From Octopus bimaculoides (Eukaryota), in assembly GCF_001194135.2 (NCBI RefSeq), contig NC_068995.1, positions 22,086,151 through 22,149,747 of the forward strand: 63,597 nt of DNA, written 5' to 3'. Positions 1,848-56,351 of the stretch are shown here, piece by piece. The stretch's first letter is position 1, and every line of letters begins with the position of its first letter. Below the pieces are notes generated by a model. It had not been told where the DNA came from, did not search any database, and saw only the letters and a list, made by a program, of their open reading frames with translations. Made by a program: the position numbers and the translations under genes.

Positions 1848-2655
1848 TAAGTTTGCAATGTGTCAAATATAAATGTTGATGAATGATATTTAGGTTAATA
1901 ATGCCAACTGCCACAGCTATATTTATTTAATATTCTGCACATAATCTTGTGAATAAGAAATAATCTTATAGGCAATAAAGAAATGAATATTTATGCGAGT
2001 GAATTTTAAATGAGAAATAATAGTGTAAATTATTCTAATGGTTTATGTATTCATATTATGAATTCAGACCATCTTAAACTAAGAGAAATTAGATATGATA
2101 CTTTATTTAAAAAATGGTCCTGCGAAGGGTTTGATGATATTTTCTTGTATAATATATATGTATTGAATTTAAATGATTTTAGTTTGGATATTACAAAATA
2201 TTACATTTTATTTAAAATATATCAAATCACAGTTTAACATAATATACTAAAACTCAAAAATAAACTTTTATAAGCGTCCTGACTAGCGAGATTATGGATC
2301 TATCATTAAGATCATACTCATTCTATTATAGACATTAAGAAAAACGAGTAATTGCGTCGAATACACACACATATATGCATACACGCACACACAAACATAC
2401 GCACACACAAACACACGCACACACATAATTTTAGAGCACTTTGCGCTAATCCTCGGTGATGGGTACTCATCCGCTAGAAATACCAGTAGTTCATTCCAAG
2501 TTGCAATATCTAGAAAATTAGTGACACCCAGTCATTGAGCTTGCGTAAGAGACGAAAGCAGTAACTATACTAAGAAGTAATGTTTGTCGCCACTTCAACA
2601 TGGCTGTTCCCCAGGAACCGACGTTTCTGCCATTTTAACTCCAGGAGTACACCTC

Positions 2656-2657
<2 letters not shown>

Positions 2658-2717
<60 letters not shown>

Positions 2718-2742
2718 TAATAATAACAATGATAATAATAAT
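2658..2742. repeat. (TAA)n microsatellite, possibly the tail of a retroposon 3' end at about 2520-2657
   Basis: Repeat seen directly; the retroposon-tail reading is inference. Confidence 0.9.
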
Positions 2743-2783
2743 ACTTTAAAAGGATCCACGTAACTCTTGACAAAGTTAAACAG

Positions 2784-3069
2784 ACAAGACGAAGAGCGCG
2801 ATTCGATTGCAATAGGTATTTTATTGGTTGAGCATTATTTCGCCAGCAAGTCTGGCTTTGTCGAGTTCAAAAAAAAAAAGTGATAAAAATTCAAAATTAT
2901 TGTAATTCAAATATGAACGAGAACAACCAGCATCCACACTTTGATGAAATGACATCATCAGTCTTTAAGTTCCAATTTTATAACTGGCGAAAAGAAAAAG
3001 ACAGAAAAAAGGAAATATCGTTCAACCAATAAAATATCTATTGCAATCGCATCTCGCTCTTCGTCTTGT
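2784..3069. repeat. 48-bp inverted repeat pair (MITE-like or foldback)
   Basis: 2784-2831 acaagacgaagagcgcgattcgattgcaataggtattttattggttga is the reverse complement of 3022-3069 with 3 mismatches; no clear TSD. Confidence 0.65.
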
Positions 3070-3847
3070 ATGATTACCATTGTGGAGAGTTACGTCAATC
3101 CTTTTAAAATATCAAAATCAAGTAGATTGAGAAGAGGATTGATTTGATATTGCACCGAATAAGTGTTACAACATATAGAAATTCTGGAAGTTACCGAAAC
3201 AGTCGGGTGTCTAAGGAAAATCATAATGTAAGTTATAGCTTTTGCGTTTTATTCTGTCTACAGTTGGCTTGTCAGGCCTGTTAGTTTCGCTAGACCTCAG
3301 TGTTGATCCCAATCCAGGCCCAATGGATTATGTACTATTCAACTACGAATCAGAAAATGAGAAATCGACATTTCTATCAGTTAAAAACCCTAATCATTTT
3401 TGTGCTAAAATCAAAAGCCATTTATCATTTCTGGAAACATGCAAACCAGAAAAAGTTATACCGGAGGGTCTTACAACAAATATACTAATGTGTGTATTAC
3501 AGCCGCCTGACGATTCATTGCTTCAAATATTTTAATCTTCGCGGGAGAGAAATTCATTTAACATAATGGGAGCTATTATTGCACACAATTGTTAAAAATT
3601 TGTATTGCTTGGTGCAGACATTAAGGAAATTTTGAGTATCCTTGAACAGGCATGTTTTCCTAAAAATCGTTTGAACTATTTGAGCATGTGTTTGATGGAC
3701 TTTGAAAAAATGGAAATGTCGGCCCTGAATGCAGAAAAAAAAGAAAAGAAGCTGAAAAAGCTGCTTTCCCATTCCTTTGAGCCAGTGGGCAAAAGAACAT
3801 TTTGGTTGAGAGCACTTGCTTTGAAATATAAGTCGGTTTTACTTTAG

Positions 3848-4295
3848 GGACAAATGTTATGTGACGAACTTATTGACGCCGGGTAGAAAATCCTAAAATT
3901 CAAATACAACCAACCACTTTTTCTCACACAGAATTTCTAACATACCGTCAACTCCACACACTGTTCATTCATCATACCAGGAATAAACATTTTGTTTTGT
4001 CGACCAATTTTTTCGGAGATGTTTATAATTATGTCAGTTTCAACATATCAATACCACAGGAATTAATAACACAAATAACAATGCTGTACTTACCACAAAC
4101 AAACATAATTCATACAGTTTAAGAAGTTCGTATAACTAATCCCTAAGTTGGCGATTATGATTGTGGCCTTTTCGCCCTGGCGTTTGAACTGGTCATTGGA
4201 AACGCTGCAGAAAAATTTTTATTTGATCAGTCAAAAATGCGAGCACATTTAAGATTTTGCCTAGAAAACAATAAATTTGTTCCTTTCCCGAAAGT
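3848..4295 (+). pseudogene. Ulp1/SENP-like (peptidase C48, clan CE) cysteine-protease domain within the PLE
   Basis: Frame 2: GQMLCDELIDAG*KILK. Frame 1 from 3961: IHHTRNKHFVLS (His 3988-3990), VYNYVSF (expected Asp reads Val), P*VGDYDCGLFALAF (Cys 4162-4164; the stop TAA is plausibly a mutated Gln CAA), then FDQSKMRAHLRFCLENNKFVPFP. Confidence 0.75.
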
Positions 4296-4988
4296 AAAGG
4301 TTTTTAAAATGCCTACGATAACCACAGAGTCACTCACTTGTTATCACCCATCAAGAAATGGATTACTCTGAGGAAGATGACTAAAAATTATGACATCTCA
4401 CAAATGTTATCTCTCAATAGATTCCATGTTTCAAGTGAATATTCCGAGTAAAGCCAAAGAAAGTAGTCAGGGATCTAATGTGAGTAAGACTCTGAAAACA
4501 ACTTGTCCAAGAAAATCCATCACACAGAGAATAAGTCGGTCATAAATATATCTAAACTCAGTCTTGGAGCTTAGACAATGTTTCTGTCTAAGCACTAAGA
4601 ATTTCAACAAGAATAAACTAGCTCAATGGCTATTTCAGTTTGTCCGCTTTCATAAGCTGAAAGAATATTTTTTGAAAAAACTAGGAACGAGGAGTCAGAG
4701 AACACTATGCTTATAGAAAATAAAAATGACGATGATAGAATCTGGCATAATTGGATTGAAAATAATCTCAAATGTTATCCAGATAAAGTTTGGGATGGAC
4801 GTTCACAAGCACTACTGGAATTTCTTGAATCAGGCAGGCATTAGGGAAAACCTTAAAACAAGTGGAAAGAAGTCGTGGAATAACCTCACAAATACTCAAC
4901 GTCATGCACTCCGAGGTCTAACTAATAAAGAATCTATTGTTAATAAAATGGCAAATAATGGAGGTGCTATCATGATTATGAAGAAAAG

Positions 4989-5156
4989 TTCTGAGTTCAA
5001 ATTCTGCCGGGGTCGACTTTGCCTTTCATCCTTTCGGGGTCGATAAATTAAGTACCAGTTACGCACTGGGGTCGATATAATCGACTTAATCCGTTTGTCT
5101 GTCATTGTTTGACCCCTCTGCGTGTAGCCCCTTGTGGGCAGTAAAGAAATAAGAAA
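4989..5156 (+). mobile_element. tRNA-derived SINE family B, 5'-truncated, inserted in the PLE
   Basis: B-box-like gagttcaaattc; body matches copies at 36911-37142 and 30121-30333. Confidence 0.85.
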
Positions 5157-6302
5157 GTATTCCATCAAATGTTCTCTGTAGGTTATTGAGGATTGTGTTA
5201 GAAATTAACACAATGAAGTTTGGATAAAAACTTTACCACCTGACGGGGTTGCGCCATGGAAACCCCGTAGCAGTCAATTTCGCTAATGTCTTCATGACGA
5301 AATTTGAGACACAGTTCCTGAAGACATTGAAATCCGTACATGGTGATGAAGCAATACTGTGGTTACGGTTCATTGATGACGTTTTTTTTTTTCTTTTTGT
5401 CTTGGAAGGGTCACAATATAGGTTAATTCACTTTTTGTATTTCTGTCTTTGTTATGGTAAAACTATGGCTTTAACTTCAACATAAAATTTAAGTCTAGTT
5501 TTTCAAAAATAGTGTTGAATTTTTGGACACAAAAGTTAAGTTTTCTGGAGAATTGTGAGAGAATTGTTTTGTATGCCCACGTCTTCCCACATTTACATCC
5601 ACCACCGCACCGTCATCCACATCATATAATTCGGTCAAATCCGAACTACTGACCTCTGTATCTGACTCCAAGAAAACATTGGAGTATTTGGACGCTGTGC
5701 CTTGAAAAGAAATCCACATGAGAGGTAAGCTATGTTCATTGTGCAACAAAATGATTCAAGTGAATTCCATCAAGAATTATAATAGAAATGTTATGATTAT
5801 ACAGAAGATAGGACACGTATAGATTCCCATTTGGTGTACACGACAGGATGCGCGAAAGACAACTCGATATATGTTAGTTGTGCAGCATAACAATTAAACA
5901 AATGATTTAATTGACATAGACATAAAGTCAGGTACAATAACAGTAGTTCAACAGAACTTGCCGAACATTTTTCCTTAAACGGCAACAATTTTTAAAAAGC
6001 AGAAAACATTCTGAAACTGCTTCACTTTAAATACTCAAAATGCATGCGGAGAAATATGTTTGCGGGGTATTAACGTCACGCCCTGGAGGAATGAATAAAA
6101 TGGCAGGAGAATGTCACCAAATTACACAAAACTGTTTGATTACATATTCTTCTTTTTTTCCTTCTCTTTTTTCTTTCCTTTTTTTCTCTCCTTTTCTCTG
6201 TCTTTTTCTTCTCACCAGTTTGCTCACTTATCTATGTGTGTTTATGTGGGTATGTATATATTCCTACATCTGCGTGAAGGTGAAAATATATANNNNNNNN
6301 NN

Positions 6303-6336
<34 letters not shown>

Positions 6337-6426
6337 ATACATGTATATATATTCTTTGTCTAATTACATTATTGAACACACACGTACTTTTTTGCAAGTA
6401 AGTCTACTTTATTATTCTGACGTAAC

Positions 6427-6427
<1 letters not shown>

Positions 6428-6501
<74 letters not shown>

Positions 6502-6530
6502 ATCTATCTTTCTATCTATTTATCTATCTG
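6428..6530. repeat. (CTAT)n microsatellite
   Basis: Seen directly. Confidence 0.95.
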
Positions 6531-6639
6531 TCGTCCTCTATCTTTCTATCTATCCCTCTGTCCTGGCATCTACTTCACTGCTATACCCTTCTGTACATTC
6601 ATCCTTGTTCCACTTCCTCCCTCCACCATCCTCTCTGCT

Positions 6640-6960
6640 CTCGTGTGACCTGTGGTCAGCATTCTTTTCACTCGAGCCGCTGTGGAGGCAAGACGAACTA
6701 CTAGCGTTCTACCTCAGGTTCGCGTTTGGCCGTACGGCTTTTGAATGTTGTTTTCACTGTCCAATTATTCCTGTCTTGGTTTGTGTTTGCCACCTTGGAA
6801 TCCTCTGTGTAGTGGGTTGTTCCACTACTCTGGAAGAGACTATTCTAGAGTACGTTCTGTCTTATCTTCGAAACGTCAGGTTAGAATAGAGACAGCTGAT
6901 CAAGGAATATTCCAAGTGGCTTTCCGTTTTCCTATGTGTTCGTTCCGTTGTCTGTAGTAC
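6640..6960 (+). mobile_element. PLE pLTR-like segment with a degenerate hammerhead motif at 6824-6885
   Basis: ctggaaga...cgaaacgtcagg (core with an extra G, GAAAC-GUC), followed by the shared block ttagaatagagacagctgatcaagg. Stem I is poor. Confidence 0.4.
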
Positions 6961-8070
6961 ATTGTTCTAACGTCCTGTACTCTGATATGCATATATATAC
7001 ACATGTAGATGTAAGTATGTACATATATGTGTGTATACATGTATATATATTATTTGTATTATATNNNNNNNNNNNNNNNNNNNNNNNNNNNNNNNNNNNN
7101 NNNNNNNNNNNNNNNNNNNNNNNNNNNNNNNNNNNNNNNNNNNNNNNNNNNNNNNNNNNNNNNNNNNNNNNNNNNNNNNNNNNNNNNNNNNNNNNNNNNN
7201 NNNNNNNNNNNNNNNNNNNNNNNNNNNNNNNNNNNNNNNNNNNNNNNNNNNNNNNNNNNNNNNNNNNNNNNNNNNNNNNNNNNNNNNNNNNNNNNNNNNN
7301 NNNNNNNNNNNNNNNNNNNNNNNNNNNNNNNNNNNNNNNNNNNNNNNNNNNNNNNNNNNNNNNGTTGTACTTAAAATGTTTGAGGCACCAGAATTTGGTA
7401 GGATAAAAACCAAAAACAAAATCAAGAGATTTGGTGAATAAAATTTGAAGTTAAGCAACCAACATTCAATAGGTCATAGCAGTACGTACGTTTCGTACAA
7501 GCTCCATTTATTCGTGTAGTGAGAACACCACAGAAAATACAATGAAAATGTACTCCTCAGCTGCATAATGGAATATCATTTTAGAAAGTCATTTTGAAGA
7601 TGTTTGCAAATAACAAGAGTAAGAGAAGAAAACATACCATCTCGACCATGCTGCTGTCAGCTAAAAGAATTCGCATTTGCAGCCAACCATGAAGAAGAAG
7701 TTAGCGATCAGCCGGTACCAGGACAGCCATCCACTATCATTCATAGCAGTCAAACAAACACACTCTGCAGCCAAACATGAATCTCTCAACTGCTACAAAA
7801 TTCAAATCAATACGGACGGATAGGTTGATCTTAAAGTCGATGCTTTTGAACTAACGGAGACAACACTTGAAATCCCGTGAGGAAACACAACTGGATTTCA
7901 TTATGCAAATAAAAAGTTGCCTAATCAAATACCTGTACTTTTGGAGAAACTCGTGGAGATATTTGTCGTGATTAAAAGACAAATGTCCAACCGTACTCCT
8001 TCTTGTTGACTCCAATTTCTTTAATGTGATATATATGAAGGCGCAAGAATTGTGAAGGTGCGTGGCTGTG

Positions 8071-42479: not shown

Positions 42480-44430
42480 TCTTTTGTACATCCGAACATG
42501 GGATGTAAGCACACACCTTTCAATATCCTCCCAAGAACCCGCACCATAAATCACACCAGGGCACTCCATAACAACAAGGGACAACTACATAACAGCTACC
42601 GTCTCAATCACCTCAATCATTTTTTAGACCCAATTCGCAAACACAGAGATGCGAGATAGCACCAGACAGACAGACAGGAGTAACCAAAAGTGATAAAATT
42701 ATCATCAATCTAACTCACAAAGAACTAACAGCAAACCAAATCAGCATACACTCCAAACGGCTCGATTTTAAACCCCACACAACGCTCCAACTACAACGAA
42801 ATGAAAGAATACGATGCGGAATTTTATAGAAAATAACGACTCGCTGAGGACGAATCGTTAATCCGAAATATAAGTAACTACAGGACTTCAAAAGGTAAGA
42901 ACAAAATTCCTGACCATTTCTGTGAAAACAACACGAATTACCCATATCAGCATATGCACAAACAAAAACACAAACCAAACTTCAGCAAAAAGAATGGGCT
43001 GAGCTGAACTAATTAAAAGATGACAAAACAATAACAATCAAAGAGGCTCATAAAGTGGGTGTATTGTCTTAATGGATACGGTAACTCTAGTACTATCCAT
43101 ATAAGACGACACAACATATTATGAAAAGGTCCAACACTACAGTCAGCAGAAAATAATGAGAAACCTAAAACCTATGTTAGACAAATAAAGTGAAGGGCTC
43201 ACCGATAAGGAATAAAATTATATGACTCACCTCAAAAGTAAATTCAGTCAATTCTACGGTATTCCTAAGTTACACAAAAGTGAGAAAATAAGTAACGCAT
43301 GCAAGATAGCCACAGACATAATAATCAAGGTCCCTACTCCTAATGACCTCAAATTAAGACCTATAATAGCAGGTCCCGCATGCGAAATCCACTGCCTCAG
43401 TAACCTTTTAAATACCCTCTTTTAACCATTCTTCAAGCATATCAAAAGCTACATAATTGACGTCCTAGATATGCGCAGTCACCTACCTCTCTTAAACAAT
43501 AAACAAAAACACCCTACTAGTATTCTACTAGTATCCTTCGATGTAGTCAACCTCTATTCTAATATCTTCCGTAGCTTAGGAATAAAGGCAATTAAATTCT
43601 GGCTAGATAATTACTCTAATGAGCTCCCATATCGCATCAAAAAGGAATTAGTTATAGAGGGGCTAAACTTCATCTTGGAAAATAACTATTTTGTGTTTAA
43701 AGACAACTTCTATCGACAAAAATCCGGGACTGTGATAGATACGAGAATGACCCCCTCATTTACTAACCTTGTCATGGAATGTCTAGAAATCAGTCTTTAT
43801 TGTAATTTACTAGAGAAATATGGCAACCCATTCTCCCTCTACATAGAAAATAACTGGAAGAGGTATCTAGATGACTGTTTCATTGTTTGGCATAAAAGTA
43901 TAGAGGGACTTAAAGAATTTCAAGCATTTATAAATGGACTAGACATAAACATTCAATGGAATACAGCCATCAAAAACTTTCATTCCCCGACATCCTCATT
44001 AAGAAATCCAACAATAAAATAGAAACAAATATATACGGATAAGCCCACGGACTCCAAGCAACACGTACCCTTCAAATCATGACACACCAGACGCACTAGA
44101 ATGAATATCTCTTTCAACCTACCAAAAAGGATTTGTACTATAGTTTCTAATAAAAGCACCAGGGACACACGACTGCATGAACTAAAGGATACATCCATTA
44201 CAAGGAACTACCCACCATCACTAACTGGTATAGGCTTTTAACGTGCCCTACAACTCAACGTCCACGAACTCAGACATGCCAAATTGAACAATGATTTACA
44301 ACCAAAAGCCCTAACATACATTTCCACACACAACCCTCTTAACAAAGATGCCTTCGACACGATCCTCCAGAACATTTTCGTACTAAAAACGAACAACAGA
44401 ATGAATTTAATCCTCCAAATGCATACCCAA
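42480..44430 (+). mobile_element. Decayed PLE reverse-transcriptase region
   Basis: IIINLTHKELT, FYGIPKLHKS, LRPIIAGP, LVSFDVVNLYSNI, FILENNYF, WKRYLDDCF, KPTDSKQ (ORFs 43222-43425 and 43471-44022). Confidence 0.9.
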
Positions 44431-54699: not shown

Positions 54700-56351
54700 G
54701 TGAGTTGTTAAAGAGATTTAAAAGCATACCGGTTTCGTAATATTACTAATCATTGCTTTGAATGCACACCGAATTCTGAACGGTTTCAAGTCTATTAGTC
54801 CCTTAGTAAAAATATTATGTGTAAGTGAGGTACGTAGTTCTGGATTTAGTGCAATTAGGGTAGATCTGGATCTGGAATGTGAATGGTGTATGGGATGTAT
54901 GGGGGTTAGTGGTATTAAATGGAAGATTAGTAGTGTTCTGTATTATGTTGTGTTCATATTTAGTTCAGGAAGATATTTATTAATGAAAATCGCCTCTTTA
55001 TTCATTCTTTGTTGTGTTGAGGTGTTCTGTGGACATTGATAGAAGGGAAAAATTAGGAAATTAGGATAAAGATTCCTCGCACACCTTTCTATGTGTCCAT
55101 TGACCTGTATCTGTCTGTAATGTGGGTGGCGGATTTGTTCTTTGTGGAGAGTTGTTCTTCTACGGAGTGATAATCCTGTTTGGCCAATATAGTTATTACT
55201 GCACCTTAAGCATGTAATGGCATAGATTAGATTTTCCGATGCACAGGTGAAATTTTATTTAATCTTAAATATTTCACCTTGTATAAAGTGGAACTCCGAA
55301 CGCTCCAAAAGGTGGTGGCAAGTACCTCAGTTAGTTCGACCATATTTTTTCACTTTTGGTTCTGTTGTTAATGAAAATAGTCTTGCGCTGGTTAATATTT
55401 TTTTTCATTGATTTAGGTTGCATTTTACTTTTGATAATTGTGTGTGAGTCTAAAATTTTGTTCATTGTTTTATCTCTTGTGAGGATGAGTAGATTTTGGA
55501 TGATAACGTTAAAGACGTCGTTGTTTCTAGGGTTATGTGTGGAGATGTATGGGAGTATTTTAAATTCTGGTTTAGTATTTCGGTTGACTTCCCTTAATGT
55601 ATGTTTGTCTATTTCCTTAGCTCGGTTGATTCCATCATTTATTAATGATATTGGGTATCTTTTGATTAGTATTGATCTGAGTTCAAGGAGTCTTCGTTCA
55701 CGAGTCTAGGAGTCCGAAACTATGGTACAGATTCTTTTCGTTAGATTATAAGGTATATTAATTTTTCATGTGTTTGGGATGACATGAGTTGAATTATAGG
55801 TATTGTTTAGAATCTGTAGGTTTATAGAAGATGTCTGTTTCTATGTGGTTATTGACTATTTTAATTAGGATGTCAAGAAAAAGGAGTTGTTTACTGCTGT
55901 GTTCCATGGTTAATTGTATGTTGCTATTAATATTGTTAAGCATTATTTTGAAATCGAGGAGTTTGTCCATGCTGTCTTTCCAAAGTATAAAACAATCATC
56001 CAAATACCTCTTCCAGTTCTCCTTTAAATAGCAATGAAAAGAGATGCCATATTTTTGTAATGATGATTGATATATTTTAAGTTCTATGATATACATTATT
56101 ACTTTGACTTCAGATTTTCACTTTAGATACTGAAGACAATATCATCTGTTATACCAACCTTTGAACCCATTACAAGGTTCGCAATCACTGGCGCAGCTCG
56201 GGGTCCTCATTGCAATTCCACATTTTTGTCAATAGTAAGCTGTATCGAACATGAAATAGTTGTTCAGTAGGATATACCCACAAGCGATTCCAGGGTGCAT
56301 CAACCACAGATTCATAATCACAGCACTCAAATTCATCCTACTGAACAACTA
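54700..56351 (-). mobile_element. 5'-truncated PLE (RT C-terminal half, thumb, GIY-YIG) with an inverted 5' segment
   Basis: ILLNNYF, CGIAM..AAPVIANLVMG, WKRYLDDCF, YKPTDSKQYL, and NFTCASENLIYAITCLRCSNNYIGQTG...RHP. Closely related to 42480-44430. Confidence 0.9.
54721..54759 (-). ncRNA. Minimal type I hammerhead with an A3-U8 core swap at the PLE 3' end
   Basis: aaagca-ATGATTA-gtaatattac-GAAAC-cg-GTA-tgcttt: 6-bp stem I, palindromic stem II and stem III (ACCGGT). Confidence 0.7.

Follow-up and report, generated by a model that had tools for sequence, protein, structure and literature searches.

A clan CE peptidase domain and a 2A-like leader in a lineage of Penelope-like retrotransposons, traced from a decayed copy in Octopus bimaculoides

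Can a retrotransposon of the Penelope type carry a cysteine protease related to Ulp1 and the SENP enzymes as part of its own polyprotein? The question is raised by a decayed Penelope-like element (PLE) in a 63,597-nucleotide stretch of the Octopus bimaculoides genome (NCBI RefSeq assembly GCF_001194135.2, contig NC_068995.1, positions 22,086,151 to 22,149,747 of the forward strand; hereafter the window, numbered from its first letter). Among retrotransposons PLEs, the sister group of telomerase, are the class least well understood, and their open reading frame (ORF) is normally described as a reverse transcriptase (RT) plus a GIY-YIG endonuclease (EN) only. An earlier note, made from the letters of this DNA alone, had read the element as a PLE with an in-frame Ulp1/SENP-like protease between its N-terminal domain and the RT, serving either to process the polyprotein or to remove SUMO and thereby counter silencing. 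Two matters are at issue: whether the protease segment belongs to the PLE or was inserted into this one copy, and what such a domain would do for a retrotransposon. The comparisons reported here establish the lineage. The family is one of canonical PLEs with two extra modules, a peptidase domain and a 2A-like leader; as a repeat, the window copy is dead and ordinary, and its interest lies in the family that it revealed.

The window copy alone gave no family match because it is too decayed: its stitched translation had no relevant Pfam match, phmmer comparison of the translation with the PDB gave chance matches only, and an 841-aa stitched pseudo-protein returned 0 matches in a word-indexed protein search. 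Relatives were instead found with a 74-aa stop-free piece (4147-4368), comprising the Cys motif and the C-terminal tail of the protease segment, as the query of an exhaustive HMMER search of 1.84 billion proteins. This piece matches 476 proteins at E ≤ 1e-3, the best at 5.7e-26, a result well outside chance. The two best matches are short fragments, 74% and 71% identical to it, and one of them is an O. bimaculoides protein, UniRef A0A0L8FR10, auto-named 'Ubiquitin-like protease family profile domain-containing protein' and 70% identical to the window by tblastn; the octopus copies compared beyond the window are two short fragments. Where annotation now calls such domains host 'ubiquitin-like protease' genes, the octopus being an example, they should be recognised as transposon fragments. 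Long proteins among the 476 carry the matched stretch at about aa 340-400, and when P0056, an intact family protein, seeded a second search, ten more relatives of 987-1,371 aa came up, all close to full length. Intact ORFs of the family range from 1,223 to 1,371 aa.

In intact members a single protein of about 1,250 aa contains, in order, a leader of about 60 aa with a hydrophobic segment and a 2A-like motif, a helical domain, a compact peptidase of about 170 aa, a variable linker, the RT and the GIY-YIG domain. At least 11 full-length proteins from independent samples share this order in one ORF. In P0051, P0056, P0150 and P0151-P0159 the peptidase lies within about aa 193-478 and is followed by Pfam RVT_1 and GIY-YIG, and P0159 (1,266 aa) exceeds the Pfam gathering cut-offs for Peptidase_C48 (22.5 versus 20.7 bits), RVT_1 and GIY-YIG together. 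The same holds at the nucleotide level, where protease and RT share one uninterrupted ORF on each of three contigs, L001 (383-4120; Tara Oceans metagenome PRJEB4352), L002 (243-4118; SRR28422186) and L003 (70-3816; SRR29001126). Three further assemblies contain degraded genomic copies in the same order: protease, then DUF8422, then RT and HTH_animal. Among the proteins fetched, 26 of the 29 with at least 150 aa beyond the peptidase run on into PLE RT or EN, and 17 of the 27 with at least 150 aa ahead of it share the N-terminal domain. P0056 is itself collinear with the window by tblastn (E down to 1e-35), its aa 46-276 matching 3263-3949, aa 254-670 matching 3847-5034, aa 822-971 matching 5162-5611 and aa 1151-1208 matching 5822-5998.

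The family belongs to the canonical PLEs, those with a C-terminal endonuclease. Its members match RVT_1, DUF8422 and HTH_animal and carry IKPADKGG or ADKS, so that the PLE-specific N-terminal RT motifs, including DKG, are present. GIY-YIG exceeds the Pfam cut-off in P0056, P0150, P0069, P0151 and P0159, and the endonuclease CCHH motif is present in relatives, with CxxC between GIY and YIG and the two His residues downstream. L001 has a terminal direct repeat (18-234 = 4526-4735, spacing 4.5 kb) and L005 is a head-to-tail tandem with a spacing of 4304 bp, the pseudo-LTR (long terminal repeat) and tandem organisation typical of PLEs. The family thus resembles the C-terminal-EN elements Penelope/Poseidon, Neptune and Nematis in its single ORF, its N-terminal RT motifs with (A)DKG, RT core and HTH_animal/thumb, its C-terminal GIY-YIG domain with CxxC...H...H, its tandem or pseudo-LTR copies and the microsatellites at its flanks, and differs from them in the clan CE peptidase and 2A-like leader placed ahead of the RT (Craig et al., 2021; PMC8557442).

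A second, possible difference from canonical PLEs concerns the hammerhead ribozyme, for which Rfam gave no match in the window or in L001-L005, at the gathering threshold or at a permissive E value, and a custom scanner likewise found none. L001 alone has a hammerhead-like core at 262-293 (CTGATGA-A-GGATA-GAGA-TATCC-GAAAC-GTTTC), non-canonical with its bulged A and not called by Rfam; a pattern search did not find it in the other loci or the window. This core sits on the 5' untranslated region/terminal-repeat side of L001, and its palindrome AAACGTTT permits the dimeric helix III described for PLE ribozymes.

Could the protease in the window nonetheless have come from elsewhere, by nesting of another transposon, by transduction of a host exon or by chimeric assembly? 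Plant KI-MULEs carry Ulp1/C48 domains. Such domains are also cargo of other DNA transposons, including CryptonF/S (PMC3212892) and Ginger2 (PMC2836005), and in these elements, as in the PLEs, a clan CE peptidase is accessory cargo whose role is only putative in each case. Related stand-alone proteins with a PHD finger and a C48 domain occur in mussels, a starfish and frogs, and a frameshift lies within the window peptidase domain itself. Against an insertion of this kind, the order described above recurs in one ORF in the full-length proteins from independent samples and in the degraded copies, and a repeat comparison of the window found no repeats flanking the peptidase segment (3854-4293). 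Unlike Crypton and Ginger2, DNA transposons in which the domain occurs in separate ORFs or fusions, the PLE peptidase is in frame with a reverse transcriptase, in a retroelement. Family copies keep the protease segment, and no sign of a nested insert with its own ends was seen.

The history of the domain points the same way. Among the 11 full-length proteins the peptidase has a mean pairwise identity of 49%, close to the values for the RT core (53%) and the EN (46%), and peptidase and RT distances correlate across them (r = 0.74, Mantel p ~ 6e-4). Judged from these distances, selection has constrained the peptidase about as strongly as the RT. When 122 peptidase domains are placed in a neighbour-joining tree, which is rough and carries no support values, the 25 PLE-linked domains fall into one clade of 38 tips that includes none of the 23 PHD-linked relatives. 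P0161, a related PLE lacking the protease, shares the N-terminal HxxFLxxC..[VI]PKGL motif and has an acidic low-complexity linker at the peptidase position. Because P0161 has the same N-terminal motif with only a linker in its place, the peptidase looks like a single acquisition by the PLE lineage, between the N-terminal domain and the RT. Intact ORFs, co-variation with the RT, membership of one clade and tandem genomic copies together make the protease an integral, selected domain, and we reject the nested-insertion explanation as extremely improbable.

The stand-alone relatives deserve a separate word. Many proteins of 170-330 aa among P0176-P0271 (from Mytilus, Acanthaster planci, Hyla, Engystomops, Pseudophryne and other assemblies) combine a domain of this C48-like subfamily with a PHD finger, and these small proteins are probably cargo of another repeat family. 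They share with the PLE peptidases the subfamily, 28-36% identity and the FDQ..MR.HL..C...FP tail, and are unlike them in keeping the tunnel Trp residues discussed below, in having a PHD finger and no RT, and in falling outside the PLE clade.

What kind of peptidase is it? In an alignment of 38 sequences including the window copy (A1), the catalytic His and the Asp-Cys pair ('DC') are invariant, and every sequence but the window copy keeps the catalytic Asp as well as the Gln that precedes the Cys by six residues; in the window copy Val and a stop stand in their place. A second alignment (A2, 64 sequences) agrees, with the Gln invariant in 64 intact relatives, and all 38 domains of the PLE clade have the catalytic His, Asp and Cys. 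Compared with the PDB, the domain profile matches the Ulp1-like SUMO protease 6dg4 (E = 7e-8) and SENP1 (1.4e-6), as well as SENP5, SENP2, Ulp1, SENP8, OtDUB and RickCE, and its His, Asp, Gln and Cys align with the catalytic residues of SENP1. Pfam Peptidase_C48 (PF02902) is matched by 32 of 38 members, the best at 1.8e-7; P0159, P0176 and P0195 exceed its gathering score. An AlphaFold2 model of P0151 aa 236-407 (mean predicted local distance difference test score (pLDDT) 93.9, predicted template modelling score (pTM) 0.90) has only clan CE proteins as its top 41 Foldseek matches in the PDB, led by SENP5 (E = 3.5e-5, TM 0.68) and including Ulp1, XopD, SENP1/2/3, NEDP1 and adenain. By alignment and predicted fold, the protease-like domain is a clan CE, Ulp1/SENP-like cysteine peptidase whose active-site His, Asp, Gln and Cys are all preserved in intact members. 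The earlier note had called for exactly such a clan CE match, and profile, Pfam and fold comparisons each supply one.

The PLE peptidase resembles Ulp1/SENP (MEROPS C48, clan CE) in fold, with Foldseek TM values of 0.6-0.68 to SENP5, SENP1 and Ulp1, in its 'DCG' Cys motif, and in how its catalytic His, Asp, Gln and Cys are ordered and spaced (about 15 residues from His to Asp, six from Gln to Cys). It is unlike them in being only 11-18% identical and about 170 aa long rather than about 220 aa, in its conserved C-terminal extension FDQxxMRxHLxxCL...PFP, and in being embedded in a retrotransposon polyprotein. It differs too at the substrate tunnel. Two Trp residues form the Gly-Gly tunnel in Ulp1/SENP structures and clamp the Gly-Gly tail there. 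In the PLE clade these are mostly F/Y and E/Q. Of its 38 domains, 24 have F, 6 have Y and 8 have W directly behind the catalytic His, and just 5 keep the W of 'WLxD', E or Q being the usual residue there. Non-PLE relatives, by comparison, retain W at the first position in 80 of 84 and at the second in 43 of 84. A compact enzyme of about 170 aa with an altered Gly-Gly tunnel may have unusual specificity.

The second extra module lies at the N-terminus. Fourteen relatives with complete N-termini (P0051, P0056 and P0150-P0160 among them) have [IV]ExNPGP after a hydrophobic stretch, at about aa 17-139 and mostly at 56-66. The family consensus, DPS[IV]ExNPGP, has Ser at position -8 where the canonical 2A sequence has Asp, and the window keeps the remnant SVDPNPGP. 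The AlphaFold model of P0151 places long helices between this motif and the peptidase. A 2A-like motif here would release the hydrophobic leader during translation or else adjust how much protein is made. Similar sequences stand at the N-termini of ORFs of APE-type non-LTR retrotransposons (Odon et al., 2013, PMC3708506; PMC13405545), in which [IV]ExNPGP likewise follows a hydrophobic or helical stretch; the differences are that the host element is a PLE and that position -8 is Ser, not Asp. The 2A literature checked, these two papers included, yielded no mention of such motifs in PLEs. If the putative activity is real, the conserved leader would bring to three the classes of retroelement that use StopGo recoding.

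DNA repair and the silencing of transposons by piRNA- and KRAB/KAP1-type pathways both depend centrally on SUMO. That a Ulp1-like domain has stayed catalytically intact, under constraint like that on the RT, suggests active manipulation of a ubiquitin-like modification pathway by the element. We hypothesize, with a probability of roughly one half, that the peptidase is an active isopeptidase for ubiquitin-like proteins (Ubl), deconjugating them in trans and so favouring transposition. It would enter the nucleus on the retrotransposition protein and take SUMO, or a Ubl related to it, off host factors of chromatin, silencing or repair, or off the protein that the element itself encodes; Ubl removal would in turn relieve SUMO-dependent repression and favour target-primed reverse transcription. 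If true, the element would offer a compact, natural case of transposon counter-defence that can be tested.

Several observations weigh against this proposal. First, the counter-silencing idea is inferred from general knowledge of SUMO-dependent transposon repression. Second, most PLE-clade domains have other residues at the two tunnel Trp positions, and the substrate may not be a canonical SUMO tail. Third, a conserved [IV]xGG stands directly before the GIY-YIG domain in 9 of the 11 full-length proteins (in P0056 at about aa 1140-1150) and would fit self-processing instead. Finally, the Ser in place of Asp leaves the skipping activity of the 2A-like leader, with which the peptidase is paired, putative. 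Neither the leader, nor the predicted long helices that follow it, nor the loss of the tunnel Trp, nor the [IV]xGG motif was mentioned in the earlier note. The most inclusive form of the proposal, in which a PLE lineage in cephalopods and other, partly marine, eukaryotes combines a 2A-like leader with an isopeptidase of the Ulp1 type whose substrate tunnel is remodelled, and uses this enzyme as a retroelement de-SUMOylase or Ubl deconjugase against silencing or on repair factors at the integration site, we put forward tentatively, as possible rather than probable.

The [IV]xGG motif bears most directly on a different function, in which the peptidase is a maturation protease that cuts the element's own polyprotein, in cis or in trans, for instance at [IV]xGG, freeing the nuclease or an N-terminal module from the RT. 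Adenain and pS273R of African swine fever virus are clan CE enzymes that cut after Gly-Gly. The motif matches the adenain-type cleavage consensus and is not at that position in P0161, adenain and pS273R are among the fold matches, and loss of the SENP-type Trp pair would itself suggest a non-SUMO substrate. The 2A-like motif would already separate one product, implying multi-product expression. Set against these points, two of the 11 intact proteins (P0156 and P0158) have no GG before GIY-YIG, P0161 is the sole protease-less PLE compared, the best sequence and fold matches are SENP/Ulp1 rather than viral maturation proteases, and other PLEs operate as a single RT-EN polypeptide without a protease, as is reported for Penelope (Pyatkov et al., 2004, as cited in PMC3212892). 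Self-processing of this kind is the main rival of Ubl deconjugation, and we consider it doubtful.

The peptidase fold may also have been kept for a role other than proteolysis, as a Ubl/SUMO-binding or targeting module, or as an acetyltransferase of the YopJ type, which is also clan CE. A few members have weak matches to YopJ Acetyltransf_14 and to RickCE, and HopZ1a is among the weaker fold matches. The full conservation of His, Asp, Gln and Cys argues for catalysis instead, matches to C48 are stronger and commoner than these (32 of 38 members versus 5 of 38), and the top fold matches are isopeptidases. A non-proteolytic role is accordingly unlikely, and deconjugation of a Ubl remains the reading that we favour.

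Interference with host protein modification has been proposed for other elements. Josephin-like domains occur in Dualen non-LTR elements and in the PLE Chlamys-1_cBra (PMC8557442), and OTU domains in Helentrons (PMC6431247). Like these, the family described here has a deubiquitinase-type domain fused to its replication protein, and in those cases interference with host protein modification or degradation has been proposed; unlike them, its peptidase belongs to clan CE rather than clan CA and occupies another position in the protein. The accessory domains given in the 2021 PLE survey, the fullest of its kind, are PHD, SAP, Josephin-like and zf-CCHC, and C48/Ulp1 is not listed (PMC8557442). Our full-text literature search found no published link of PLEs with Ulp1, C48, a SUMO protease or 2A, with Repbase Reports and subscription papers lying outside that search and an earlier mention in them possible.

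The window copy, from which the family was recognised, is an old, dead pseudogene in which all functions of the element are defunct. Its parts are as follows.

~3156-6165, + strand: whole element, a decayed PLE.
3156-3292, + strand: remnant of the ORF start and leader; the start codon is lost and the frame changes from 0 to 2 between ~3195 and 3262.
3293-3322, + strand: degenerate 2A-like (StopGo) motif DLSVDPNPGP, corresponding to the family consensus given above.
3323-3853, + strand: helical N-terminal domain, placed by tblastn against relatives, with stops at 3533, 3593 and 3845.
3854-4293, + strand: clan CE/Ulp1-like (C48-like) peptidase domain, inactivated, between the helical N-terminal domain and the PLE RT.
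4294-4987, + strand: variable linker, then PLE N-terminal RT motifs (DUF8422 in relatives).
4988-5156, no strand assigned: insert of a repeat resembling a short interspersed element (SINE), 169 bp, from the within-window repeat comparison.
5162-5611, + strand: RT core motifs 4-7, with GNPVAVNFANVFM at 5258-5296, LRFIDDVFF at 5363-5389 and VEFLDTKV; the motifs span 5258-5537.
5730-6165, + strand: linker CxxC remnant (5730-5753), GIY-YIG remnant and ORF end (PGGMNKM, 6082-6102).

A three-frame translation of 3100-6200 places every motif quoted in the earlier note where it had been reported. In frame 2 the N-terminal domain has HLSFLETC at 3419-3442 (HLSFLETC...VIPEGL, 3419-3472) and KKEKKLKKLL at 3737-3766, and the peptidase has LCDELIDAG at 3857-3883; after a frameshift at about 3940-3950, inside the peptidase, frame 1 carries KHFVL (3985-3999), YNYVSF (4024-4041) and DYDCGLFALAF (4153-4185). 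The start at 3242 has to be moved, since the element begins about 90 bp upstream, at about 3156: TTYRNSGSY (3168-3194) is the counterpart of M-DDLQTYRSRIG in intact relatives, and the hydrophobic GLSGLLVSL comes next. An apparent mini-intron, GTAAGT...ACAG at 3228-3263, was rejected, being 36 nt long and not restoring the frame on removal.

Other claims about this copy hold in part. The protease is in one frame with the rest of the protein in intact relatives but not in the window pseudogene. The catalytic His (codon 3988-3990) and Cys (codon 4162-4164) are retained as described, but at the supposed Asp site the catalytic position is Val (GTC, 4033-4035), and the oxyanion Gln is a stop (TAA, 4144-4146). 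Downstream, RT motifs 4-7 are present, but motifs 1-3 are missing where the SINE-like repeat sits; this insert occupies the exact spot at which about 150 aa of the RT are absent, the gap corresponding to aa 670-822 of P0056. The comparison of RT with protease for which the note had called yields the correlated distances and the single neighbour-joining clade described above, that clade with the reservation already attached to the tree.

The PLE motifs that remain ahead of the insert are VINIS (4539-4553), FHKLKEYF (4648-4671), NLTNTQRHAL (4882-4911) and the ADKG remnant ANNGGAIMIM (4951-4980), and the GIY-YIG endonuclease is recognisable in LVYTTGC...SIYVSC (5831-5881). Stops interrupt the frame-2 stretch 3263-3949 five times (3533, 3593, 3845, 3884 and 3938) and the frame-1 stretch 3952-5034 six times, with those at 3884, 3938, 4120 and 4144 lying inside the peptidase domain. 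In all, the first 1.8 kb of the element have at least 11 in-frame stops, and the frame changes at least 8 times between 3168 and 6102.

The surrounding window is AT-rich DNA with microsatellites and assembly gaps. Repeat comparison found no other copies of the protease-bearing family within it, and no terminal repeat or tandem arrangement around the copy described. Two other decayed PLE fragments are present, at 43054-44298 (+ strand; RT) and 54976-56282 (- strand; RT and GIY-YIG). They belong to other families, being only 28-33% identical to the protease-bearing element, and neither has protease-like sequence upstream.

Directly 5' of the element is a unit resembling a miniature inverted-repeat transposable element (2741-3112), with inverted arms of about 100 bp (2741-2841 versus 3012-3112) that are 85% identical, and preceding this unit is an (ATA)29 microsatellite (2657-2743). 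At the other side, the 3' end of the element, placed approximately, merges into CT-rich sequence with microsatellites, (TA)n/(TG)n and (TCTA)31, and a pair of assembly gaps (6148-6554, 6294-6303, 7066-7300). This setting fits the microsatellite-associated insertion reported for PLEs. ARAGORN found no tRNA in window positions 2000-7000. The SINE-like repeat that interrupts the RT, about 170 bp long, has four further copies in the window, at 36978-37147, 37196-37303, 30167-30264 (- strand) and 27858-27922, and its longer copies are 86-88% identical to each other.

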